Sequence record: PQ741806.1
DNA: 64,000 nt
Reading direction: 5' to 3' (one strand)
Below the pieces are notes generated by a model that did not search any database, was not told the DNA's origin, and worked only from the letters and a program-made list of their open reading frames with translations. Shown here piece after piece: positions 4,273 through 61,591 of this stretch; position 1 is the first letter of the stretch, and every line of letters starts with the position of its first letter. The translations under genes and the position numbers were made by a program.

Positions 4273-7328
<3,056 letters not shown>

Positions 7329-26865: not shown

Positions 26866-28380
26866 ATGTTTGAGTTATTGTTGTCTTCTGGACTAACAAA
26901 TACGCCTATATATTCCGATCCTTATCCAGGTCCTAAAACACTGATAGCTGGGACAAGGGAATTAGGTTTGTATGGTGAAACAACATCTTCAGAATTATTT
27001 GGTTATGATGATGCAGCTAAATTAGTTAATATGACATTTGGAACAGTAATCAATGATGGACAACCATGGTTAAAGTTCTCTAATAAAAATGTTACTTGTT
27101 ACATACCAAAGAAACCAGCTCGTAAATCAATACAAAAATCACGGCTTAATAATGCCGGACTCCGTAATGGTGACTATGAAGTTAGATTTATGGGGAACAT
27201 TTATAAATTTGGTTTATTAACAATGGCTGGTGCCACATCAGAATGGCAAAGGTTACTTTATAATGTTCACGTATCTAATTTAAATGGTGCTAACTGGCCT
27301 TATAAATTTACAGATAATGACTTAGGTATTAACCAAGCGGTCGCTGGTGGTATTAGCACTGATGGTACTACTAACTGGGGAAGAGACCCAGGTAGTGATC
27401 CAGTTAATGACCAGCTCTATCGTGGCTACTATGCGATTGATATAACTAGCTCGTCAAGTAGTGAAACGGGTGCTGCAACCCAAGGTTGGCGTCCAGTGGT
27501 TTATGCTAGTGGTACATATCCATTCGTTAAAGATAATGTTATTAAACTTACTGATTTTGAAACTGATAACGAAATGGCAGCAGGTGCCCAAATAGGTAAC
27601 TTAGTCTATTATTACGGTGGTAAGAATAATGCTAATACTGCTCTACGTACACTGAATTTAGTCACGGGTAAGTTAACAACATTACAACCAACTGGTACGC
27701 CTATAGCAGTTAAACAATGCTCGGCTGTTGCATTTAATGGTAAAGTATATTTCTATGGTGGTGAAAGTGCCACAGATGGTGTACTTACTAAAGATATGCA
27801 GTGTTATGATCCTGCAACTAATACATGGGAAATAAAATCACCAGGCACGATAGCTTGCCGGTATGCACGTGGAACTAGTCTTAATGGGTTAATCTACATA
27901 TTAGGTGCAGCTGATACAACTGCGACAAATAATCGTGGATTTACATTAATGTACAATCCAACTACAGATACATATACCAGTGGTGCAGCATTTAATGATA
28001 CTGGGGAATATACCCAAGATTATTCAGTGAGTATTTATAATAATAGCGTATGCGTTATTGGTGGTACGGTTGGTGCTGGTGTTAATACTGGAATCATATC
28101 GTACAATCAAACCAACAATAATTGGTCCAAACCAATAACTACAGGTATACCTCTTGGTGCAGCTATTAATATACGCCCATCTGGTGAACTTTATGTAATC
28201 GCTGGTGAAAATCAAAATAACGCACCAATTAAGTATTATGAACCACGATTAGCACGATGGATAAATTTAGGTAATTTAGAAACTGGTTTAGTGGATGCAG
28301 GTTTTGCCAATACGTTTAATAATGACGGTAAGATTTATGTTCTAAACGGTAATCAGAATTTAAAATACCAAATTAGTTAA
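26866..28380 (+). CDS. Virion protein: phiKZ MFELLL/YPGP-type N-terminus plus a C-terminal Kelch beta-propeller (gp83-like)
   Basis: Kelch-like blades GNLVYYYGG, NGKVYFYGG...YDPATNTW, NGLIYILGA...YNPTTDTY, NNSVCVIGG. Confidence 0.7.
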   Translation: MFELLLSSGLTNTPIYSDPYPGPKTLIAGTRELGLYGETTSSELFGYDDAAKLVNMTFGTVINDGQPWLKFSNKNVTCYIPKKPARKSIQKSRLNNAGLRNGDYEVRFMGNIYKFGLLTMAGATSEWQRLLYNVHVSNLNGANWPYKFTDNDLGINQAVAGGISTDGTTNWGRDPGSDPVNDQLYRGYYAIDITSSSSSETGAATQGWRPVVYASGTYPFVKDNVIKLTDFETDNEMAAGAQIGNLVYYYGGKNNANTALRTLNLVTGKLTTLQPTGTPIAVKQCSAVAFNGKVYFYGGESATDGVLTKDMQCYDPATNTWEIKSPGTIACRYARGTSLNGLIYILGAADTTATNNRGFTLMYNPTTDTYTSGAAFNDTGEYTQDYSVSIYNNSVCVIGGTVGAGVNTGIISYNQTNNNWSKPITTGIPLGAAINIRPSGELYVIAGENQNNAPIKYYEPRLARWINLGNLETGLVDAGFANTFNNDGKIYVLNGNQNLKYQIS

Positions 28381-28386
28381 CGAAAT

Positions 28387-28411
28387 AAACCCTCCCGTAA
28401 TGGGAGGGTTT
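28387..28411. terminator. Bidirectional terminator AAACCCTCCC-GTAAT-GGGAGGGTTT
   Basis: 10-bp stem between convergent transcription units. Confidence 0.8.
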
Positions 28412-28483
28412 TATGATGTGTCGAAGTTTATGTTAGCAGTAATGATCAATTGATAATATTTAATTAGGAATACCTTCCATTTT

Positions 28484-28852
28484 TTAATATCCTTCATTAA
28501 GTAGTTCTGCTAGAGCACGTGCCTGTGAAATATCAGTAGAAGCAAAAACATCAGAAAGATAGTTATCATGTTCTTTTGCATTCTGACGCAATTCATCCAT
28601 TAGATGTTTATTAGATACCGCCCATACTTTCCACAGATTTTTATAATCATCATATTTGGGATTATACCCGTCTAGTGGTGGTTTTCCTTTACCAGCTTTC
28701 CAATGGTTGGAGTATATGCGATATCCTTTACAATCTAACTGCCAAGCTTCCTCAATTGTTCTGCCATCAGGAAGCCTTGCGTAAAGAGCCGAGAATCTTT
28801 TGTCACCAACAGATGAACATTCATATCCTCCTCGGCGCTTCCACTGATATAT
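28484..28852 (-). CDS. Hidden 122-codon ORF lacking an ATG/GTG/TTG start (IYQWKRRGGYECSSVGDKRFSALYARLPDGRTIEEAWQLDCKGY...SQARALAELLNEGY)
   Basis: Manual translation; fills an otherwise empty 370-bp gap; AT-rich third codon positions as in neighbouring genes; begins at an ATA overlapping the gp82 TAA. Confidence 0.75.
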   Translation of the reverse strand: MYQWKRRGGYECSSVGDKRFSALYARLPDGRTIEEAWQLDCKGYRIYSNHWKAGKGKPPLDGYNPKYDDYKNLWKVWAVSNKHLMDELRQNAKEHDNYLSDVFASTDISQARALAELLNEGY

Positions 28853-30768
28853 TACTTTGGGTTCTTATAGGTATTAATAAACTTCTCTAGCAGGGTGTCC
28901 ATTTTAGGAGCACCCATGATCTTCTGTGTGATTTCAATAGCATTAACCCTACCACCTGTTAAGTTTACGCCAACTTCACGGCGATGGTGTTCACTAATTC
29001 CTTCCATCATTGAGAATTCCATCACACATGTTTCACGTGCAATATTTAGAATCTGACTAACGTTAGGATATGTCGACACGATGTCAAGGTCGGCGATATG
29101 ACAGAAGATTAAGGTTTTATAATTCGGTAAATCTTTAACACACTGCAATCCATTTGGACCTGCCATGTATGATGGTAGTGTAACAATCCAATCATTATGG
29201 CCAATAACATATTGATCAAGTTCATGCACCATCTGATCTGAACTTGAACCAATGACACATGGCTCTGGTCTATTCAAATACCAGAAGTGCATATCGTCAC
29301 ATAGTCGTTTTGGGTTAGAACTAAAGTTCTTATAGTCAGATGCCTTAGAGAATAGACTTATAGAGCGACCAAGGTCATTTACTTGTTCATCAAGTTGTTC
29401 TAGTCGAATGGAGTCGATGATGTTATAAAGACCATATTTGATTTTATGCTTAGTCTGCATCTCACGGTGCCAATCGATACCACCAAGATGTGCAGTTTCT
29501 TTAAAGGTTAACTTACCAAATTCCATTACATATCTAATAGAATCACCATAGGTAAAGTTATCATTTAATATAAAATCATCCACCGGTACCCATTCATTAC
29601 TACCTACATTTTTAATATATTTAGTAATAACGCCGCCTGGTCGGTCAACTAGTTGTTTATTAAAACCTTCAATAAAATCTTCTAAGTCCTTATCATTTTT
29701 AATGGTCGTGGATTTATCGATGTTTAGTTCTTTTCTAAGAATAGACTCTAACCGATAGTTAGGATCACGTCCTTTAGCTAATCGAGTTACTCGATAAGTT
29801 GACATAGAATCGATACATTGAAAACTAGAGGGTGCTGTAATCCAATGCCATTGATCCTCCGGTCCTTTAGATTTAGTGACCCCAGATGCAGTGGTGGTCA
29901 TAGGTTCATCAATCTTAAAATGGAAATACCTATAATTCTTAGGTACCGATGGATCAGAAAAAACATCAGCTGGATTAACACCATAGTGTTCTAATGTTTT
30001 TAAGATTCTACCAATGTCGAAGCTAATATTCCAGAATGCGAAGAAATCTGGTTTCCAGGTATGTAGTCGTTTAAAACATTCAATAATAATATCTACTGGT
30101 GTTTCAACAACCATTACTTCAATATCTAGACCACGTTCTTTAATTAGATGTGATAATACCTCTTCTTTTTGTGCTTGTTCTAATGTCTCTTTCACTGGAT
30201 CTTCAATATCACTAACCCATCGTTTTAAATAGGCTAAGAAAGCTTTGTTCTTATGTGTAACTGACATACAGATAATCTGACCATCGTTCTCAGCTTCATA
30301 AACGTTGGTTTCGATGTCACCGCCAGCAACAGTGTTTAGAGAGATTAGACCAGGATAACGTTCTTGATAATCATGCTTCAGATAACAGGTTGAACTAACA
30401 TCACTGCCATATAGGTAAGGACTACGCGCTAGTTGACGAAGAGATCTAGCCGAATAGTCACCTAGGATTTTACTAATCTTACGTTTCATGTCAATTTGAG
30501 TTGACATGTATTTAACTAAGTTACGCTCATATTCGTAATCTTTCTTTTCTTTATGGTTACGCATTCCTTTTGAGGTAATCCAAAAAGGACGCTGGTAGTT
30601 TTCCCACATCCTTAAATTATTTGCAGTTGTACCATCTTCAAAATGAATTCGTTCTTTAACGAAATGCGCATCTGTAAACTTACCAAATTGATCAGTACAA
30701 TAAGTAATATGTTTGGCTTCAATGCCCTTAATCTTTTTCTTATTTGTAACCTGTTGTTCATTAGACAT
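28852..30768 (-). CDS. B-family DNA polymerase, 3'-5' exonuclease plus motif-A part of the split enzyme (gp82-like)
   Basis: ExoI DIET, ExoII FWNISFD, ExoIII YNIID, polymerase motif A DLDIVSTYP. Confidence 0.8.
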   Translation of the reverse strand: MSNEQQVTNKKKIKGIEAKHITYCTDQFGKFTDAHFVKERIHFEDGTTANNLRMWENYQRPFWITSKGMRNHKEKKDYEYERNLVKYMSTQIDMKRKISKILGDYSARSLRQLARSPYLYGSDVSSTCYLKHDYQERYPGLISLNTVAGGDIETNVYEAENDGQIICMSVTHKNKAFLAYLKRWVSDIEDPVKETLEQAQKEEVLSHLIKERGLDIEVMVVETPVDIIIECFKRLHTWKPDFFAFWNISFDIGRILKTLEHYGVNPADVFSDPSVPKNYRYFHFKIDEPMTTTASGVTKSKGPEDQWHWITAPSSFQCIDSMSTYRVTRLAKGRDPNYRLESILRKELNIDKSTTIKNDKDLEDFIEGFNKQLVDRPGGVITKYIKNVGSNEWVPVDDFILNDNFTYGDSIRYVMEFGKLTFKETAHLGGIDWHREMQTKHKIKYGLYNIIDSIRLEQLDEQVNDLGRSISLFSKASDYKNFSSNPKRLCDDMHFWYLNRPEPCVIGSSSDQMVHELDQYVIGHNDWIVTLPSYMAGPNGLQCVKDLPNYKTLIFCHIADLDIVSTYPNVSQILNIARETCVMEFSMMEGISEHHRREVGVNLTGGRVNAIEITQKIMGAPKMDTLLEKFINTYKNPK

Positions 30769-57782: not shown

Positions 57783-58087
57783 CGTTGTGTTCAGATAAGT
57801 TCGTTAAGCTTATCCCGTCTATTAATAATAGACAGCTGCATGTCACCATGCAGACCAGACTATATCTTCACCTTTGGCATTACCCAGTAAGGTGCTCCCC
57901 ATTTCGAGTCACTTGACTCTACTCTACTCGGTTCACTTTCGTGCCTTTCGATAGTCGTTGAACGTTCAATCCATTTCTGGAAAGCTTCGCTGCTGATTGT
58001 CTCATTGAGATGTCCCAGCAATTAAAGGAGTTTTGTCGAGTAATATTTCTATTACAAGGAAACCATTTAGTATTAATATACAAATTA
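57783..58087 (-). mobile_element. Group I intron (IA2, td-like), 305 nt, ORF-less, inserted between HRN and PTL
   Basis: P1 GAAAU/GUUUC with a U-G pair at the splice site; P, Q, R and S elements; ends AACACAACG. Confidence 0.92.
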
Positions 58088-59224
58088 ATTTCGGTGAAAA
58101 GTGCAACCCATTCCTTTATATGGTGCGGCCTCTGCAATTAACTCTTTAAATAGATCAGCGATGATTTGGTTATATTGAAGTACATTCTCATATACAAATG
58201 AGAATGCTTCACGAGTTGTCATGTTAAACTTAGCTTTTAACTTGTTAGTTAGATGATACTTTAATAATTGACAACCTACTCCCCAAGGGATATGTAATTC
58301 ATCATAATCATGCGGGTCACTAATAGAAGTGATTACTGCACGTGCCGTAGCGTTGAGACGAGCACCAAACATGTGACGCCGAGCAAGACCAGGCTTTTGA
58401 GCAATTCGTGATTTTGCGTAGATCTCGTAGAACTGGCCATATAGTCTTAGTCCTCGCATAGTCCTATTCTGAGCTTTAATTGGACTAAGTGGTACAGATG
58501 ATGCATCAATACTAGCGAAGGTTAAGGTAGCATCAATTGCTGCTTCAATTGGTTTATCTAAGTAAGTACCAGATGTGGTTGATTCTGCTACGAAACAGAG
58601 TTTAGAAGGAACTGGTAAATATTTAGGGAATAACTTATCTTTATTCTGAGCAACGAATTGAGCGAATTCGGATTTATTATTAGAAATAATATTTGCATCT
58701 AGTAGGAATTGGAAGATCTCATTGAAATTATCAATGAAGTGATTTAATCCTCTTTCAAATCCTCGATGCAGTAGCCTATCTACTTTTCTGCGTGTTTCTT
58801 TAGAACCAATAGATTCCACATCGTATCGATAAGAAGTATCAGTTAGATATGCTAAGAAATCGAATTCTTTAGTTACTAGATATCCGGTTAGCATAATGAT
58901 TAAACGTGGGTTAATTAGACTACGTACATGTTTTGGTGTACGAACCCACATTGATGGTTCGATAGGGCGGCTAGAAGTATTGACAACTGGAGTATTACAA
59001 ATATCACAGATTACTCCGAGTTTATGTGCGTCTTCGATTGCTCGACAATCACAACTTACGCTACTTTCAATTGCTTCTGAATCTTGGAAATGAGAATAGA
59101 AATGCCTATCAAATTCTTCTTTCTCATCTGAGTTACTCGTATTGTAATCATTGGCATAAATACGTTTACCCGTAAATTGATCATGTACTTCATCATGATC
59201 AACAACTTTGGCATAAAGACCCAT
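58088..59224 (-). CDS. nvRNAP catalytic beta-prime subunit, exon 1 (gp55)
   Basis: Zn finger CDC...CDIC; KPGLARRHMFGARLNATARAVIT (bacterial [22 protein letters not shown]); spliced product 379+36+72 = 487 aa. Confidence 0.92.
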
Positions 59225-59259
59225 ACCAAACTCCTATTTATCGATTAACAAAAAAAGGA

Positions 59260-59292
59260 GATATAAGCGGCCCCCGAAGGAGCCGCTATATC
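59260..59292 (-). terminator. Strong intrinsic terminator with a UUCG loop and a downstream U8 tract
   Basis: Minus-strand sense AGCGGCTCC-TTCG-GGGGCCGCT...CCTTTTTTTT. Confidence 0.85.
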
Positions 59293-59293
59293 A

Positions 59294-59618
59294 GTTTTTA
59301 CAATGGACCACCAACGGAGCCTGGCCCGAGCCTAGCGTCATCTACAAAGCTTAACCTCCGCTCTTCTTTGTAGCATACCGGCACTAGTCTCATTTACCAT
59401 CCATTGTAGTTTTTGATCACACGTTACCTTTTGAGTAACTCCTTTCGGTTAAGTGATCTATCATCCTCGTGTAGTGATAGGTCGACCTAGACTAAGTCCA
59501 CTAGTCGATTACTTCACGGAACCTACTCCTAACCGTTATCACCGAAGTGAACCAGGGTCGCAGTATTAGAATCGGGATGTTACTTATTTAACATCCCTAT
59601 CTACCGAGGTATTTCCTA
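59294..59618 (-). ncRNA. Putative structured RNA (chimallin 3' trailer or separate ncRNA), class unknown
   Basis: No ORF; many nested stems; cUUCGg and GAAA tetraloops; a possible pseudoknot. Confidence 0.6.
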
Positions 59619-61499
59619 TTAGTACCAGGTACCCGGTGCATTATAGGAAGGAGCGCCGTAAGTTTGACCCATGCTGCCAGCCATGCCAACTTGTGCACTA
59701 CCAGAAACAGCCATGTTACCCATACCGGTGTAACCAGCGAAGCGCTGTTGACCGAAGTTGGTAATTAGGTTTTCCATGGTTACAGTTACACCAGCTGCTG
59801 CTGCTGCGGCATCCATTGCGGTGATGAATTTCGGGTTAAAGGTTAGACGACGAGCACGACCAGTATAGGTAACGTTACCTAGGTACATCTTGTCGAAGCC
59901 TTTACTGTTATTCATACGACGCACAATGTGGTCATTACCTACTTGAGTAGCATACCAGGTCTTCCACTCTTGATCGTTACCTTCAGACATGTTCATGGCA
60001 CCTAGAACGTCAAGATCACGACGGTCACTTAGTTCGCCATGCTCATCAGTGTAGTGACCGAGGTCTACTTCATGATGGTTGTCAAAGATGATCGGACCAG
60101 CTTCAGCTAGGTTATAGAACTGACGGAAATCAGTGCCATATAGGTTAGTTAGAGCTTGGAAGATCAGGCTAACTGCACGAGCTTGGTTTACGCCACCAGC
60201 TGCATCTAGGACTACTTGCTCAAGAGCAGAGTTGTCACCCATCGGATCGATATCGATCTGGAATGCAGGGTTCTGGTTAACCATCTTGTTCATTAGCATT
60301 ACGAAGTTGCTGTCGTCTGCCATGAATGCTTCGGTGCGAGTTTCAATCGCTTTACCTAGCTCTGAGTAATAACCAAGTGCACCAATATCACGCATCTTGC
60401 TGGTAGCGATCTTCGGCATTAGGGTACGAGCCCATGCCTGGGATGCAGTTGCACGATACGCATTACCAAGTGCGAACAGCCACATTTCTAGAGTCCATGC
60501 TTGGATCCAGGAAGCCTTACGAACGTCAGTGATAACGATGTAAGGAGTGAACTGCGGAGGTAGAACTGCACCAGGTAGAGTTACGCCGAACATACCTTGT
60601 TGCTGGCCAGTGGTCGGAGTCCAATGTAGGTCTACGAATAGACTAACTTGGTTTAGCTGGCTATCGGTATCATAGAACTCGTTCTCAGGTACGTTGGTTT
60701 TCTTACCACGGCTAGTGGAGATAACCAGGTCAGAACGAATCGGATTACCGCAGCTATCTTTAACCGGAATACCATTGTAGTCTAGGTTGCAGGTAAGCTG
60801 TTCGTTTTCTGCTTTGATGTGGGTCGCAATAGAGAACGGAGTCTCATTGTTACGACGTGCGATAGCATCTTCACAGATATTAACAGATTCAACTAGTAGG
60901 TTCTTAACAGCTAGTTCATCTTTGAAGTCGAAGTCAGCATACACTGCACGGGGACCGGCAGATAGTACTTCTAGACCAGGGATGTTGTAACGGTTCCGTA
61001 GGAATTCGCCGATCTTGCTCCAGTATTGAGCAGTGAATACATCACGCGGTAGTACCTTCTCTTCAATGATGTCATCAGTTAGACCATTGTTGATCTTGTG
61101 GGTACGGGGACGGATGCGAGTACCAGGTAGGTTATCGAGTACTAGAGTACGAACGAATGCCTTCATGGAACCATTGATATCTTTAGCTAGTTTAACAATT
61201 AGTAGACCAGCCATACCAACTTGTTGCGCATCGCGATCGAAACGATGGATATCGAAATCATCAGGTAGGTCCTGATGGCGGATTGCTTCTTCTTTTACTT
61301 TAGTGAATACTTGTAGGGCATCTGCTGAACGAGCATCAGAACCATCTAGCCGCCCAGAGCGACGCATTAGATGGTTAATGCCAGTAGTTGACCCAGGTGC
61401 GCCAGCAGGACGTTGAGCTTGACGCTGTGCAGTGGGTTGCGGAGCCGGAGTGGTAGCTTGAGTTTGAACGGTGCCGATTTCGTTTTCGTTAACAGCCAT
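59619..61499 (-). CDS. chmA: Chimallin, major phage nucleus shell protein (phiKZ gp54/PhuN)
   Basis: 626-aa gene immediately upstream of gp55; sequence recognised as the phiKZ-type shell protein; strong high-expression codon bias. Confidence 0.92.
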
Positions 61500-61571: not shown

Positions 61572-61591
61572 GTAATATAAATCTCAAATTT
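61572..61591 (-). promoter_or_regulatory. Early promoter AAATTTGAGATTTATATTAC for chimallin
   Basis: TATATTAC motif about 75 nt upstream of the ATG. Confidence 0.85.

Follow-up and report, generated by a model that had tools for sequence, protein, structure and literature searches.

A modular structured RNA between the nuclear-shell gene of a phiKZ-type jumbo phage and its terminator

Organisation of the chmA–PHIKZ055 interval

The DNA analysed here, referred to as the window, is a 64,000-nucleotide stretch of record PQ741806.1 and belongs to a phiKZ-type Pseudomonas jumbo phage. Within it, the nuclear-shell gene chmA is followed on the same strand by the gene for the N-terminal part of the non-virion RNA polymerase (nvRNAP) beta' subunit, and the two are separated by some 325 bases of largely non-coding sequence and an intrinsic terminator. 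The features of the interval, all on the minus strand, are as follows.

61572..61579 (-): an exact TATATTAC octamer after a T/A-rich run, 73 nt upstream of the chmA ATG, a candidate phiKZ early promoter that would drive chmA and the RNA.
59619..61499 (-): chmA (PHIKZ054), nuclear shell protein of 626 aa, with the stop codon TAA at 59621..59619 followed in frame by TAG at 59618..59616.
59466..59608 (-): domain D1, a four-way junction.
59415..59458 (-): domain D2, a small three-way junction.
59301..59406 (-): domain D3, a three-way junction, flanked by AAAAAC linkers.
59250..59292 (-): intrinsic terminator, GAUAUAGCGGCUCC-UUCG-GGGGCCGCUUAUAUC (59292-59260), then UCC, then U7 (59256-59250).
58085..59224 (-): first exon of PHIKZ055 (gp55), the N-terminal part of the non-virion RNA polymerase beta' subunit, with an AGGAG ribosome site at 59235-59231.

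The identity of chmA rests on the open reading frame, on 99–100% protein identity to the shell proteins of the phiKZ clade and on the RefSeq annotation of the matching phiKZ stretch. The TATATTAC octamer is the core of the phiKZ early promoter, and no further match to it, with up to one mismatch, lies anywhere between 58080 and 61572, including the stretch between the terminator and the PHIKZ055 start codon. The structured region is hence most simply regarded as part of the chmA transcript, although middle and late promoters are too short to be scanned for and an independent origin is not fully excluded. The terminator consists of nine G/C-rich pairs capped by a UUCG loop and extended by five A-U pairs, and folds with an energy of -22.4 kcal/mol (z -5.2). 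It was missed by a consensus scan because the U run starts 3 nt after the stem, but it is conserved in all relatives, among them PA1C, phiHQ and PhiPA3, and is the only content of the corresponding gap in D6 and Noxifer.

Three folded domains on the chmA strand

A preliminary description, made from the sequence alone, had proposed that this interval encodes a multi-domain structured RNA of about 325 nt, and that observation is confirmed, with its coordinates and most of its helices as first described. These include GGGAUGUUA/UAACAUCCC at 59597..59574, UCAC-UUCG-GUGA at 59550..59539, UCGACU/AGGUCGA, GAUCAC/GUGAUC enclosing CC-GAAA-GG and GUUAC/GUAAC, and the (UA)CAAUGGA/UCCAUUG(UA) helix that closes the 3' domain. 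Three points require correction. The proposed helix CUAUCA/UGAUAG competes with the two helices that build the D1 junction, and whereas relatives keep it in only 4–6 of 6 pairs, the junction helices are kept in 10/10 in every sequence. The statement that the interval has no ORF is not strictly true, since a 31-aa ORF lies at 59393..59298 (-) and a 38-aa ORF on the plus strand. Finally, folding energy is only modestly better than chance and does not separate the strands, with a z score of -2.96 for the whole region on the minus strand, -2.75 on the plus strand and between -1.8 and -2.5 for single domains.

D1 is closed by CUCG (59608-59605) and CGAG (59469-59466). Arm a (59603-59567) contains UAGA/UCUA, an internal loop UA/GAU and the GGGAUGUUA hairpin, whilst arm b (59565-59524) ends in a cUUCGg loop. 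This is followed by an invariant single strand, GGUUCC (59523-59518), by arm c (59517-59474), which carries the UCGACU/AGGUCGA helix, and by an invariant UACA (59473-59470). Consensus folding with RNAalifold and pair counts show every helix to be 99–100% paired, with compensatory pairs in 5 of the 7 D1 helices. PhiPA3, which is detected by the R1 model at an E value of 9e-11, keeps the same architecture and the same junction letters, yet its arm b is fully rewritten (CGACC/GGUUA to UUAGGC/GCCUAG and UCAC-UUCG-GUGA to CUC-GAAA-GAG) and its arm c is enlarged by about 190 nt.

D2 is composed of the GAUCAC/GUGAUC closing helix, a UUAA junction, the CC-GAAA-GG hairpin, a single A, the GUUAC/GUAAC hairpin and GU. 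Its minimum free energy structure equals the centroid (z -2.4), and PhiPA3 has AACCAC/GUGGUU as a compensatory closing helix. Look-alikes of D2 sit in the chmA gaps of Phabio (L008, 4409-4460) and 201phi2-1 (L007, 4339-4389), but these could not be aligned with MAFFT and were recovered with a descriptor written by hand after they had been seen, so they count only as weak evidence.

D3 is formed by helix P1, CAAUGGAU/GUCCAUUG, an invariant GGUAAA joiner, a long P2-P3 arm ending in the invariant loop GAGCGGAGGUUAAG, and an invariant hairpin, CCAGGCUCCGUUGG. The CGGAG and CUCCG elements could form a loop-loop contact, although this is inference only because both partners never vary. In two uncultivated phages, L048 (4912-5016, 80 bits, E 7e-17) and L050 (about 489-588), all three long helices are rewritten while the loops stay letter-identical.

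It is the comparative evidence that is decisive. Among close relatives, 99.4% of 989 pair cells, representing 110 pairs, are standard pairs in sense against 87.1% in antisense, and slid controls give only 33–42%. Nine compensatory pairs are spread over 9 of 16 helices against 0–2 in slid controls, and none of 500 shuffles reaches the covariation score. Once the distant metagenomic D3 of L048 is included, 22 of 50 pairs of D2 and D3 are compensatory, although that alignment was fitted to the model. Moreover, there are 124 G·U cells against 2 A·C cells, so that the pairing works on one strand only, as RNA on the chmA strand and not as duplex DNA cruciforms. Between this phage and PA1C, D1, D2 and D3 are 87, 91 and 88% identical, whereas chmA and gp55 DNA are 61 and 63% identical and the ChmA protein 47%. 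This high identity between genera could partly reflect recent exchange and not constraint.

The G·U asymmetry bears on the possibility of a DNA-level element, such as a replication origin, packaging site or set of protein-binding inverted repeats, or of a primer RNA for replication. Chimalliviruses lack a primase, RNA-DNA hybrids have been proposed as initiation sites (10.64898/2026.10.01.755736), and the cumulative GC skew has a shallow minimum near 58–60 kb, at the edge of the window. However, the skew signal is weak and ambiguous and coincides with the unusual composition of chmA, and the element is absent from many relatives, which must also replicate, making this reading very unlikely. 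Least likely of all is that the region encodes one or more small proteins. Some deposited genomes annotate 'hypothetical proteins' of 35–62 aa inside it, but start codons and frames are not conserved between phiKZ-type, SL2-type, PA1C and PhiPA3 sequences and substitutions follow base-pairing, not codon positions. The invariant GGAGGU in the D3 loop resembles a Shine-Dalgarno sequence, yet no conserved start codon follows it.

Comparison with known RNAs and distribution of the modules

The RNA matches no known family. Searches of the 4227 Rfam models, which include riboswitches, ribozymes, RNase P, 6S, GOLLD and ROOL, at gathering and at permissive thresholds returned only chance hits to the terminator hairpin (13–16 bits; STnc130, sbrA and mir-2568), and the same holds for the homologous gaps of PA1C, PhiPA3, phiHQ, Psa21, 201phi2-1 and Phabio. 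ARAGORN found no tRNA or tmRNA gene in the whole window, and no Rfam tRNA or tmRNA hit was obtained. The earlier statement that the region could not be matched to tRNA, tmRNA, RNase P, intron or ribozyme motifs is thereby supported. Inspection by eye for RsmA-type GGA motifs, Hfq A-rich motifs, a GNRA receptor and k-turns gave candidate matches that were not conserved between lineages. Exact-pattern scans of IMG/VR for D1, D2, D3 and the terminator returned only PhiPA3, PA7 and one new D3 carrier, and those of JGI metagenomes returned no D1. The D2 pattern gave 11 hits in bacterial genomes, none of which matches the R1 or R2 models, and these are treated as chance.

The gap is one of only six ORF-free stretches of 200 nt or more in the 64-kb window, and two of the others are group I introns. 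As three bona fide group I introns lie in the window, two of them within 1.2–2 kb downstream, the region might be suspected to be the decaying, functionless remnant of a mobile element such as a group I intron or a homing-endonuclease cassette, of which this genome has several. The site is an insertion and exchange hot spot and, in a comparison by eye only, part of an alternative module, here called X, resembles the P3-P6 region of the phage's introns. AAUUGC.GG and GCCAAAGUC-like strings also raised the suspicion that module X, or the whole element, is a diverged group I intron. Nevertheless, the group I model (RF00028, gathering threshold 50 bits) gives no hit in 59230-59640 at E values up to 10 with the laxest filters, whereas the real introns score 79–89 bits, and it does not support module X as an intron either. 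No conserved intron-core elements were detected and no gene is interrupted, since the element lies after a double stop codon at the end of a full-length ChmA, with which the Psa21, 201phi2-1 and Phabio proteins align up to residue 626. Although the introns are structured RNAs of similar size in the same neighbourhood with signs of horizontal movement, the compensatory changes and invariant loops show ongoing selection, and the region is more conserved than the flanking essential genes. The remnant hypothesis is thus very unlikely and already largely refuted by the covariation.

The order chmA, terminator and nvRNAP beta' is conserved across the family, but the RNA is not. Goslar, Ea35-70, Noxifer, D6 and most metagenomic relatives have a gap of only 50–190 nt, and in Noxifer, D6, Goslar and Ea35-70 the gap of 84–105 nt holds just a terminator hairpin. 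In other phages the modules assort independently. L048 has D3 alone, and Psa21 has module X alone whereas its relative D6 has none. phiHQ carries X, D2 and D3, although its 4.2 kb upstream are 99.7% identical to PS119XW, and the divergence between the two, a clean exchange of D1 for X, starts 3 nt after the stop codon and ends at the first base of D2. The D3 of SL2 is closer to that of another genus (96%) than to that of its own (89.6%). Pattern searches for module X in IMG/VR returned only Psa21, but the core of X recurs in an unrelated Ralstonia phage, next to a tRNA gene and not next to chmA, so at least that module works independently of the chmA message. In contrast, D1, D2 and D3 have so far been seen only behind chmA and always in the same order, which would also fit a role tied to this message or to the terminator.

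D3 is the last module before the terminator (T) in every arrangement seen, namely D1-D2-D3-T, X-D2-D3-T, D3-T and D2-like-D3-T, and it ends 8 nt before the extended terminator stem. As a three-way junction with invariant unpaired letters and covarying helices, it resembles an aptamer, and a riboswitch-like sensor that binds a small molecule or protein and switches termination, so as to regulate the polymerase gene, can be envisaged. Like a transcription-terminating riboswitch, D3 is placed directly upstream of an intrinsic terminator that precedes a gene, but it sits in a 3' UTR behind two other domains and matches no known riboswitch model, even with permissive filters. Folds of transcripts truncated at the terminator loop show no shared sequestration of the 5' arm in phiKZ, PA1C, L048 and L050; in L048 and L050 the arm is not sequestered, and the alternative pairing seen in phiKZ and PA1C is not conserved. 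Moreover, D3 is diverged or replaced in PhiPA3 and Phabio, which keep the same type of terminator. This reading is considered unlikely.

A probable accessory RNA carried by the chmA transcript

The interpretation first placed on the region, that it is a cis-element of the abundant early chmA mRNA or a processed non-coding RNA acting in nucleus assembly, is only partly supported. A selected, multi-domain structured RNA does lie in transcript sense between the chmA stop codon and its terminator, but the idea of a general device for chmA mRNA localisation or export, or for nucleus assembly, is not supported, because many nucleus-forming phages lack it and close relatives shuffle, replace or insert its modules singly. 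That pattern fits an accessory element and not a core one.

A cis-acting 3' UTR remains possible but doubtful. In this view, the folded block would stabilise the very abundant chmA message against 3' exonucleases and RNase E and, together with the terminator, would set how much transcription reads through into the essential beta' gene, acting as an insulator and attenuator between a gene needed in bulk and a gene needed in small amounts. The position of the block, the conserved gene order and the absence of a promoter octamer are consistent with this. Moreover, no promoter was found for the orthologous gp107 in 201phi2-1 (PMC11512511), PHIKZ054 is described as lying in a six-gene operon (PMC8244752), and orf55 is essential by transposon sequencing (10.1101/2025.11.23.690004). 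The intergenic attenuator between rplL and rpoB in E. coli provides a precedent, in which a structured spacer of roughly 300 nt with a partial terminator separates a very highly expressed gene from RNA polymerase subunit genes in one transcription unit. There is, however, no sequence or fold relationship with it, and here the terminator alone is the conserved part and the structured block is optional among relatives. Furthermore, relatives manage with the hairpin alone, letter-invariant loops and junctions across rewritten helices are far more than a nuclease barrier needs, modules are exchanged for unrelated ones, and the core of X sits beside a tRNA gene in another phage.

The explanation preferred here, though only tentatively, is of an accessory, partner-binding non-coding RNA that rides on the very early and very strong chmA transcript. 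What the analysis establishes is that three independently folding modules lie between the chmA stop codon and an older intrinsic terminator, that they are under selection as RNA on the chmA strand, that their helices change freely while their junction and loop letters do not, and that relatives gain, lose and exchange them as units. Invariant letters on rewritten helices are the pattern of RNAs with a specific tertiary fold or ligand. The remainder is inferred from sequence, including expression, partner binding and function. Without a promoter of its own, the RNA would be made whenever chmA is made, from the first minutes of infection and in very large amounts, and would end at the terminator hairpin, which would also protect its 3' end. 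Each module would be a rigid junction fold displaying a few invariant single-stranded letters, GGUUCC and UACA in D1, UUAA in D2, and GGUAAA, GAGCGGAGGUUAAG and GGCUCCG in D3, as a binding surface for a specific partner, most likely a protein of the host or the phage, that the RNA would titrate or recruit in the cytoplasm. This would be a host-interaction or counter-defence type of add-on and not part of the core nucleus-building machinery.

Published manual screens for phiKZ non-coding RNAs by Grad-seq, dRNA-seq and ONT-cappable-seq did not report an RNA at this locus, and no paper that could be searched describes it. A roughly 100-nt RNA from the 3' UTR of PHIKZ298, found by Grad-seq (PMC8545117), similarly lies between a stop codon and the gene's own intrinsic terminator, has no promoter of its own and shares the 3' end of its parent mRNA. 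The chmA element is three to four times longer, is built of multi-helix junction domains rather than one or two hairpins, and exchanges its modules between phages, and there is as yet no evidence of a processed species, a seed region or Hfq dependence. Like the large ornate RNAs of phages and prophages, GOLLD and ROOL, and other orphan structured motifs found by comparative genomics, it is a phage-borne, multi-domain RNA with strong covariation and invariant loops, and its sister module X sits next to a tRNA gene in another phage, as GOLLD and ROOL often do. It is, however, smaller, with modules of 44–143 nt, modular in composition, and embedded in an mRNA 3' UTR at one fixed locus.

A bolder possibility, which is not excluded but remains doubtful, is that the spot between the shell-gene stop codon and its terminator is a recombination hot spot where chimalliviruses keep interchangeable, independently folding RNA cassettes (D1, D2, D3, X and others). 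These would be the RNA counterpart of protein anti-defence or host-takeover islands, expressed at the earliest and highest level by hitch-hiking on chmA, each binding and neutralising or recruiting a different host or phage factor before the protective nucleus exists.

In practical terms, annotations of small 'hypothetical proteins' in this region are probably wrong, engineering of the chmA locus with tags, reporters or knock-downs should take the element into account, and D1, D2, D3 and X are candidates for new RNA families. The natural cassette swaps, with D1 against X, D3 alone or no module, are ready-made comparisons for genetics. phiKZ is the model nucleus-forming phage and chmA its most studied and earliest abundant transcript, yet the 325 nt behind it carry an RNA that is more conserved than the shell protein itself. 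If the modules bind defined partners, they would add an RNA layer to how jumbo phages take over or evade the host during the vulnerable minutes before the shell closes.

The shell gene, its downstream gap and the folded RNA

The stretch surrounding the RNA is 100% identical to the Pseudomonas phages PaZh_1 and PhiPizzaParty and 99.8% identical to phiKZ (NC_004629 47507-47922). All genes in this part of the genome are on the - strand, beginning with chmA (PHIKZ054), which encodes 626 amino acids at 61499..59619 and ends with two in-frame stop codons, TAA TAG (59616-59621). This is followed by a 394-nt gap and then by the first exon of PHIKZ055 (gp55), the non-virion RNA polymerase beta', from 59224. 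An exact TATATTAC octamer, which is the core of phiKZ early promoters, lies behind a T/A-rich run 73 nt upstream of the chmA start, whereas no such octamer, even with one mismatch allowed, is found between 58080 and 61572. A further exact copy of TATATTAC lies at 28848-28855 (+), at the right edge of a 471-nt stretch (28381-28851) between two convergent large genes (26866..28380 + and 28852..30768 -). This stretch contains no ORF of 90 aa or more on either strand, only two overlapping + strand ORFs of 42 and 71 aa, and it may hold terminators or another non-coding RNA.

The preliminary description had proposed a multi-domain structured RNA of about 325 nt behind the chmA stop codon, and this observation is confirmed and strengthened, since the helices that it listed are present in the sequence where it placed them. 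The minimum-energy fold of 59618..59294 (- strand) is -98.2 kcal/mol, with a z of -2.96, and 0 of 100 shuffles fold as well. However, the opposite strand gives a z of -2.75 and single domains give -1.8 to -2.5, such that energy alone neither proves the structure nor identifies the strand.

The decisive evidence is comparative. Ten sequences from the phiKZ clade and from Pawinskivirus (PA1C, PS119XW, HPP-Temi, HHBS36_1) align without difficulty and give one consensus structure of 110 pairs. On this MAFFT alignment 99.4% of 989 pair cells are standard pairs, against 33-42% when the partners are slid by 1-3 columns, and 9 pairs, spread over 9 of 16 helices, show changes on both sides, against 0-2 in the slid controls. 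No shuffle of 500 reaches the observed covariation score. When the same pairs are read on the opposite strand only 87.1% are standard, because 124 cells are G·U and only 2 are A·C. The selected object is thus an RNA in chmA sense, and not a DNA palindrome or an antisense transcript. GC skew gives no clear origin signal, and a role at the DNA level or as a primer is considered very unlikely. The parts of the RNA, in window coordinates on the - strand, are as follows.

59608..59466 (-), D1, a four-way junction: closing helix CUCG/CGAG, arm a with the GGGAUGUUA hairpin, arm b ending in cUUCGg, single-stranded GGUUCC, arm c and single-stranded UACA
59458..59415 (-), D2, a three-way junction: GAUCAC/GUGAUC, UUAA, CC-GAAA-GG, A, GUUAC/GUAAC
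59406..59301 (-), D3, a three-way junction: P1 CAAUGGAU/GUCCAUUG, joiner GGUAAA, a long arm ending in the loop GAGCGGAGGUUAAG, and hairpin CCAGGCUCCGUUGG
59292..59260 (-), terminator, followed by U7 (z -5.2)

One helix of the preliminary description, CUAUCA/UGAUAG, competes with arm c and the closing helix of D1, and is kept in only 4-6 of 6 pairs, whereas the junction helices are 10/10 everywhere. Although the gap had been described as having no ORF, small ORFs do exist in the region, but none is conserved. Several deposited genomes annotate 'hypothetical proteins' of 35-62 aa inside or across the RNA and its terminator (extracted loci L013, 299-406 and 552-740, and L014, 299-406 and 551-739; records OQ992562, OQ992561). 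These are not conserved and are probably over-calls, and the possibility that the region encodes small proteins is the least likely of the readings considered. The invariant loop of D3 (59358-59345, -) also contains GGAGGU, a perfect Shine-Dalgarno core, and the invariant hairpin loop (59316-59308, -) contains CUCCG, which can pair with it. No conserved start codon follows, and the pairing may represent a tertiary contact or a mimic of the ribosome-binding-site/anti-SD pairing.

Reach and conservation of the domains

PhiPA3 (Miltoncavirus) has the same D1 and D2 architecture with the same junction letters (g, ua, gau, a, gguucc, uaca, uuaa). Its arm b is fully rewritten, with the tetraloop changed from UUCG to GAAA, and its D2 closing helix is compensatory, whilst arm c is enlarged by about 190 nt and D3 is diverged. 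The D1 covariance model finds PhiPA3 at E 9e-11. A protein-guided scan of metagenomes for ChmA relatives returned 15 loci, one of which, L048 (RCUK01000114.1, ChmA 44% identical), carries D3 alone directly after the stop codon (80 bits, E 7e-17). A contig from IMG/VR, termed L050, carries D3 preceded by a small D2-like domain. In both, P1, P2 and P3 are rewritten while GGUAAA, GAGCGGAGGUUAAG and CCAGGCUCCGUUGG are letter-identical. With L048 added, 22 of 50 pairs of D2+D3 are compensatory, against 0-3 in slid controls, although this alignment was fitted to the model, which favours the structure. D2 look-alikes also sit in the chmA gaps of Phabio and 201phi2-1, but this is weaker evidence, with E about 0.1 and a descriptor that was written after they had been seen and whose background is about 9 hits per 490 kb.

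The RNA is more strongly conserved than the genes that flank it.

Identity of segments between this phage and PA1C
D1 (DNA): 87%
D2 (DNA): 91%
D3 (DNA): 88%
chmA (DNA): 61%
gp55 exon 1 (DNA): 63%
ChmA (protein): 47%
gp55 exon 1 (protein): 62%

Part of this reflects exchange and not only constraint. Within the phiKZ clade there are two variants of D3 (alignment A2, columns 221-326, corresponding to window 59406-59301), and SL2 (Phikzvirus), PA7 and W10-2 carry the Pawinskivirus-type version. The D3 of SL2 is 96% identical to that of PA1C but only 89.6% identical to the phiKZ type, which points to exchange of this segment between genera that infect the same host.

Optional modules and their exchange at the chmA site

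The order chmA, terminator, RNA polymerase beta' is kept across the family, but the size of the gap between the two genes differs widely.

Gap between chmA and the RNA polymerase beta' gene
Noxifer: 84 nt
D6: 87 nt
Goslar: 92 nt
Ea35-70: 105 nt
Most metagenomic relatives: 50-190 nt

In the four named phages the gap holds only a terminator hairpin. In the Pseudomonas phages this hairpin has a UUCG loop, with a GGCUCC/GGAGCC-type stem in the phiKZ, PA1C, PhiPA3, Psa21 and D6 lineages. The structured block is therefore not a core feature but an insertion between the stop codon and an older terminator, and its modules assort independently.

Modules found before the terminator
phiKZ clade, Pawinskivirus: D1+D2+D3
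PhiPA3: D1'+D2+D3'
phiHQ: X+D2+D3
Psa21: X only
D6 (sister of Psa21): none
L048: D3 only
L036 (metagenome contig Ga0256874_1000001, 305 kb): another, unrelated insert of about 105 nt

The insert of L036 (about 4760-4880) is hairpin-rich and lies at the same site, between the chmA stop and a Psa21/D6-type terminator. The phages phiHQ and PS119XW are 99.7% identical over the 4.2 kb upstream, and their divergence starts 3 nt after the stop codon and ends at the first base of D2, which is a clean cassette swap. Module X, which takes the place of D1 in phiHQ (L005 4232-4540) and is the only insert in Psa21 (L006 4256-4570), is a different structured RNA of about 310 nt that itself shows compensatory changes. 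Its helices GGUC/GACC and CCCAGU/ACUGGG covary, and UACGGU/ACCGUA could form a pseudoknot. The core of X recurs at 82% identity in the unrelated Ralstonia phage RP13 (L029 2497-2588), 10 nt upstream of a tRNA-Leu gene. The same RP13 locus has a match to the twister-sister ribozyme (L029 89-164) in an intergenic stretch, just above the gathering score (36.0 against 34 bits).

No Rfam family matches D1, D2, D3 or X, at gathering or at permissive thresholds, and no tRNA or tmRNA was found. By contrast, the three group I introns of the same window, at 58085-57836 (-), 57570-57250 (-) and 43337-43109 (-), are found at 88.9, 79.0 and 84.2 bits, respectively. Two of them split PHIKZ055 into three exons. 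Compared with the phiKZ reference, the first is an extra insertion of about 305 nt, and the second lacks the roughly 900-nt stretch that carries the HNH endonuclease gp56 in the reference. In Goslar (L032 4561-4937) an annotated group I intron and an HNH endonuclease follow directly on the RNA polymerase beta' gene, so the chmA-polymerase neighbourhood attracts mobile RNA elements in distant family members too. That the RNA is itself a decaying remnant of a mobile element is nevertheless considered very unlikely. A search for a conserved anti-terminator pairing that would make D3 plus the terminator a riboswitch gave none, and a riboswitch-like D3 is also regarded as improbable, although less so than a remnant.

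Possible roles of the RNA

Full-text searches and targeted reading, which did not extend to supplementary tables of transcript ends, found no description of an RNA between gp54 and gp55 in the phiKZ dRNA-seq paper (PMC8244752), the ONT-cappable-seq paper (PMC10914365), the Grad-seq paper (PMC8545117), the 201phi2-1 transcriptome (PMC11512511), the antisense-oligomer study (PMC12571901), the transposon-sequencing preprint (10.1101/2025.11.23.690004) or the RNase H preprint (10.64898/2026.10.01.755736). The element matches no known RNA family and appears to be undescribed. From these papers it emerges that PHIKZ054 is described as part of a six-gene operon and has both a primary and a secondary start site, that no promoter was found for the gp55 orthologue of 201phi2-1, and that orf55 is essential.

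The preliminary description had further suggested either a cis-element of the chmA message or a processed non-coding RNA acting in nucleus assembly, and this functional proposal is only partly supported. The main alternative to the interpretation favoured here is a cis-acting stabiliser and attenuator that sets the ChmA to polymerase ratio. This fits the position of the RNA and the missing gp55 promoter, but it does not explain the letter-invariant loops, the module swaps or the relatives that do without the element, and it is held to be rather unlikely.

What the analysis demonstrates is a selected, modular, sense-strand RNA with specific invariant loops, which is optional among relatives and exchanged between them as cassettes. 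It is only inferred from sequence that the RNA is transcribed with chmA and ends at the terminator, and that each module is a binding fold for a specific partner. On this view, which is put forward tentatively, the function would be an accessory one, of a host interaction or counter-defence type, that exploits the earliest and strongest promoter of the phage.
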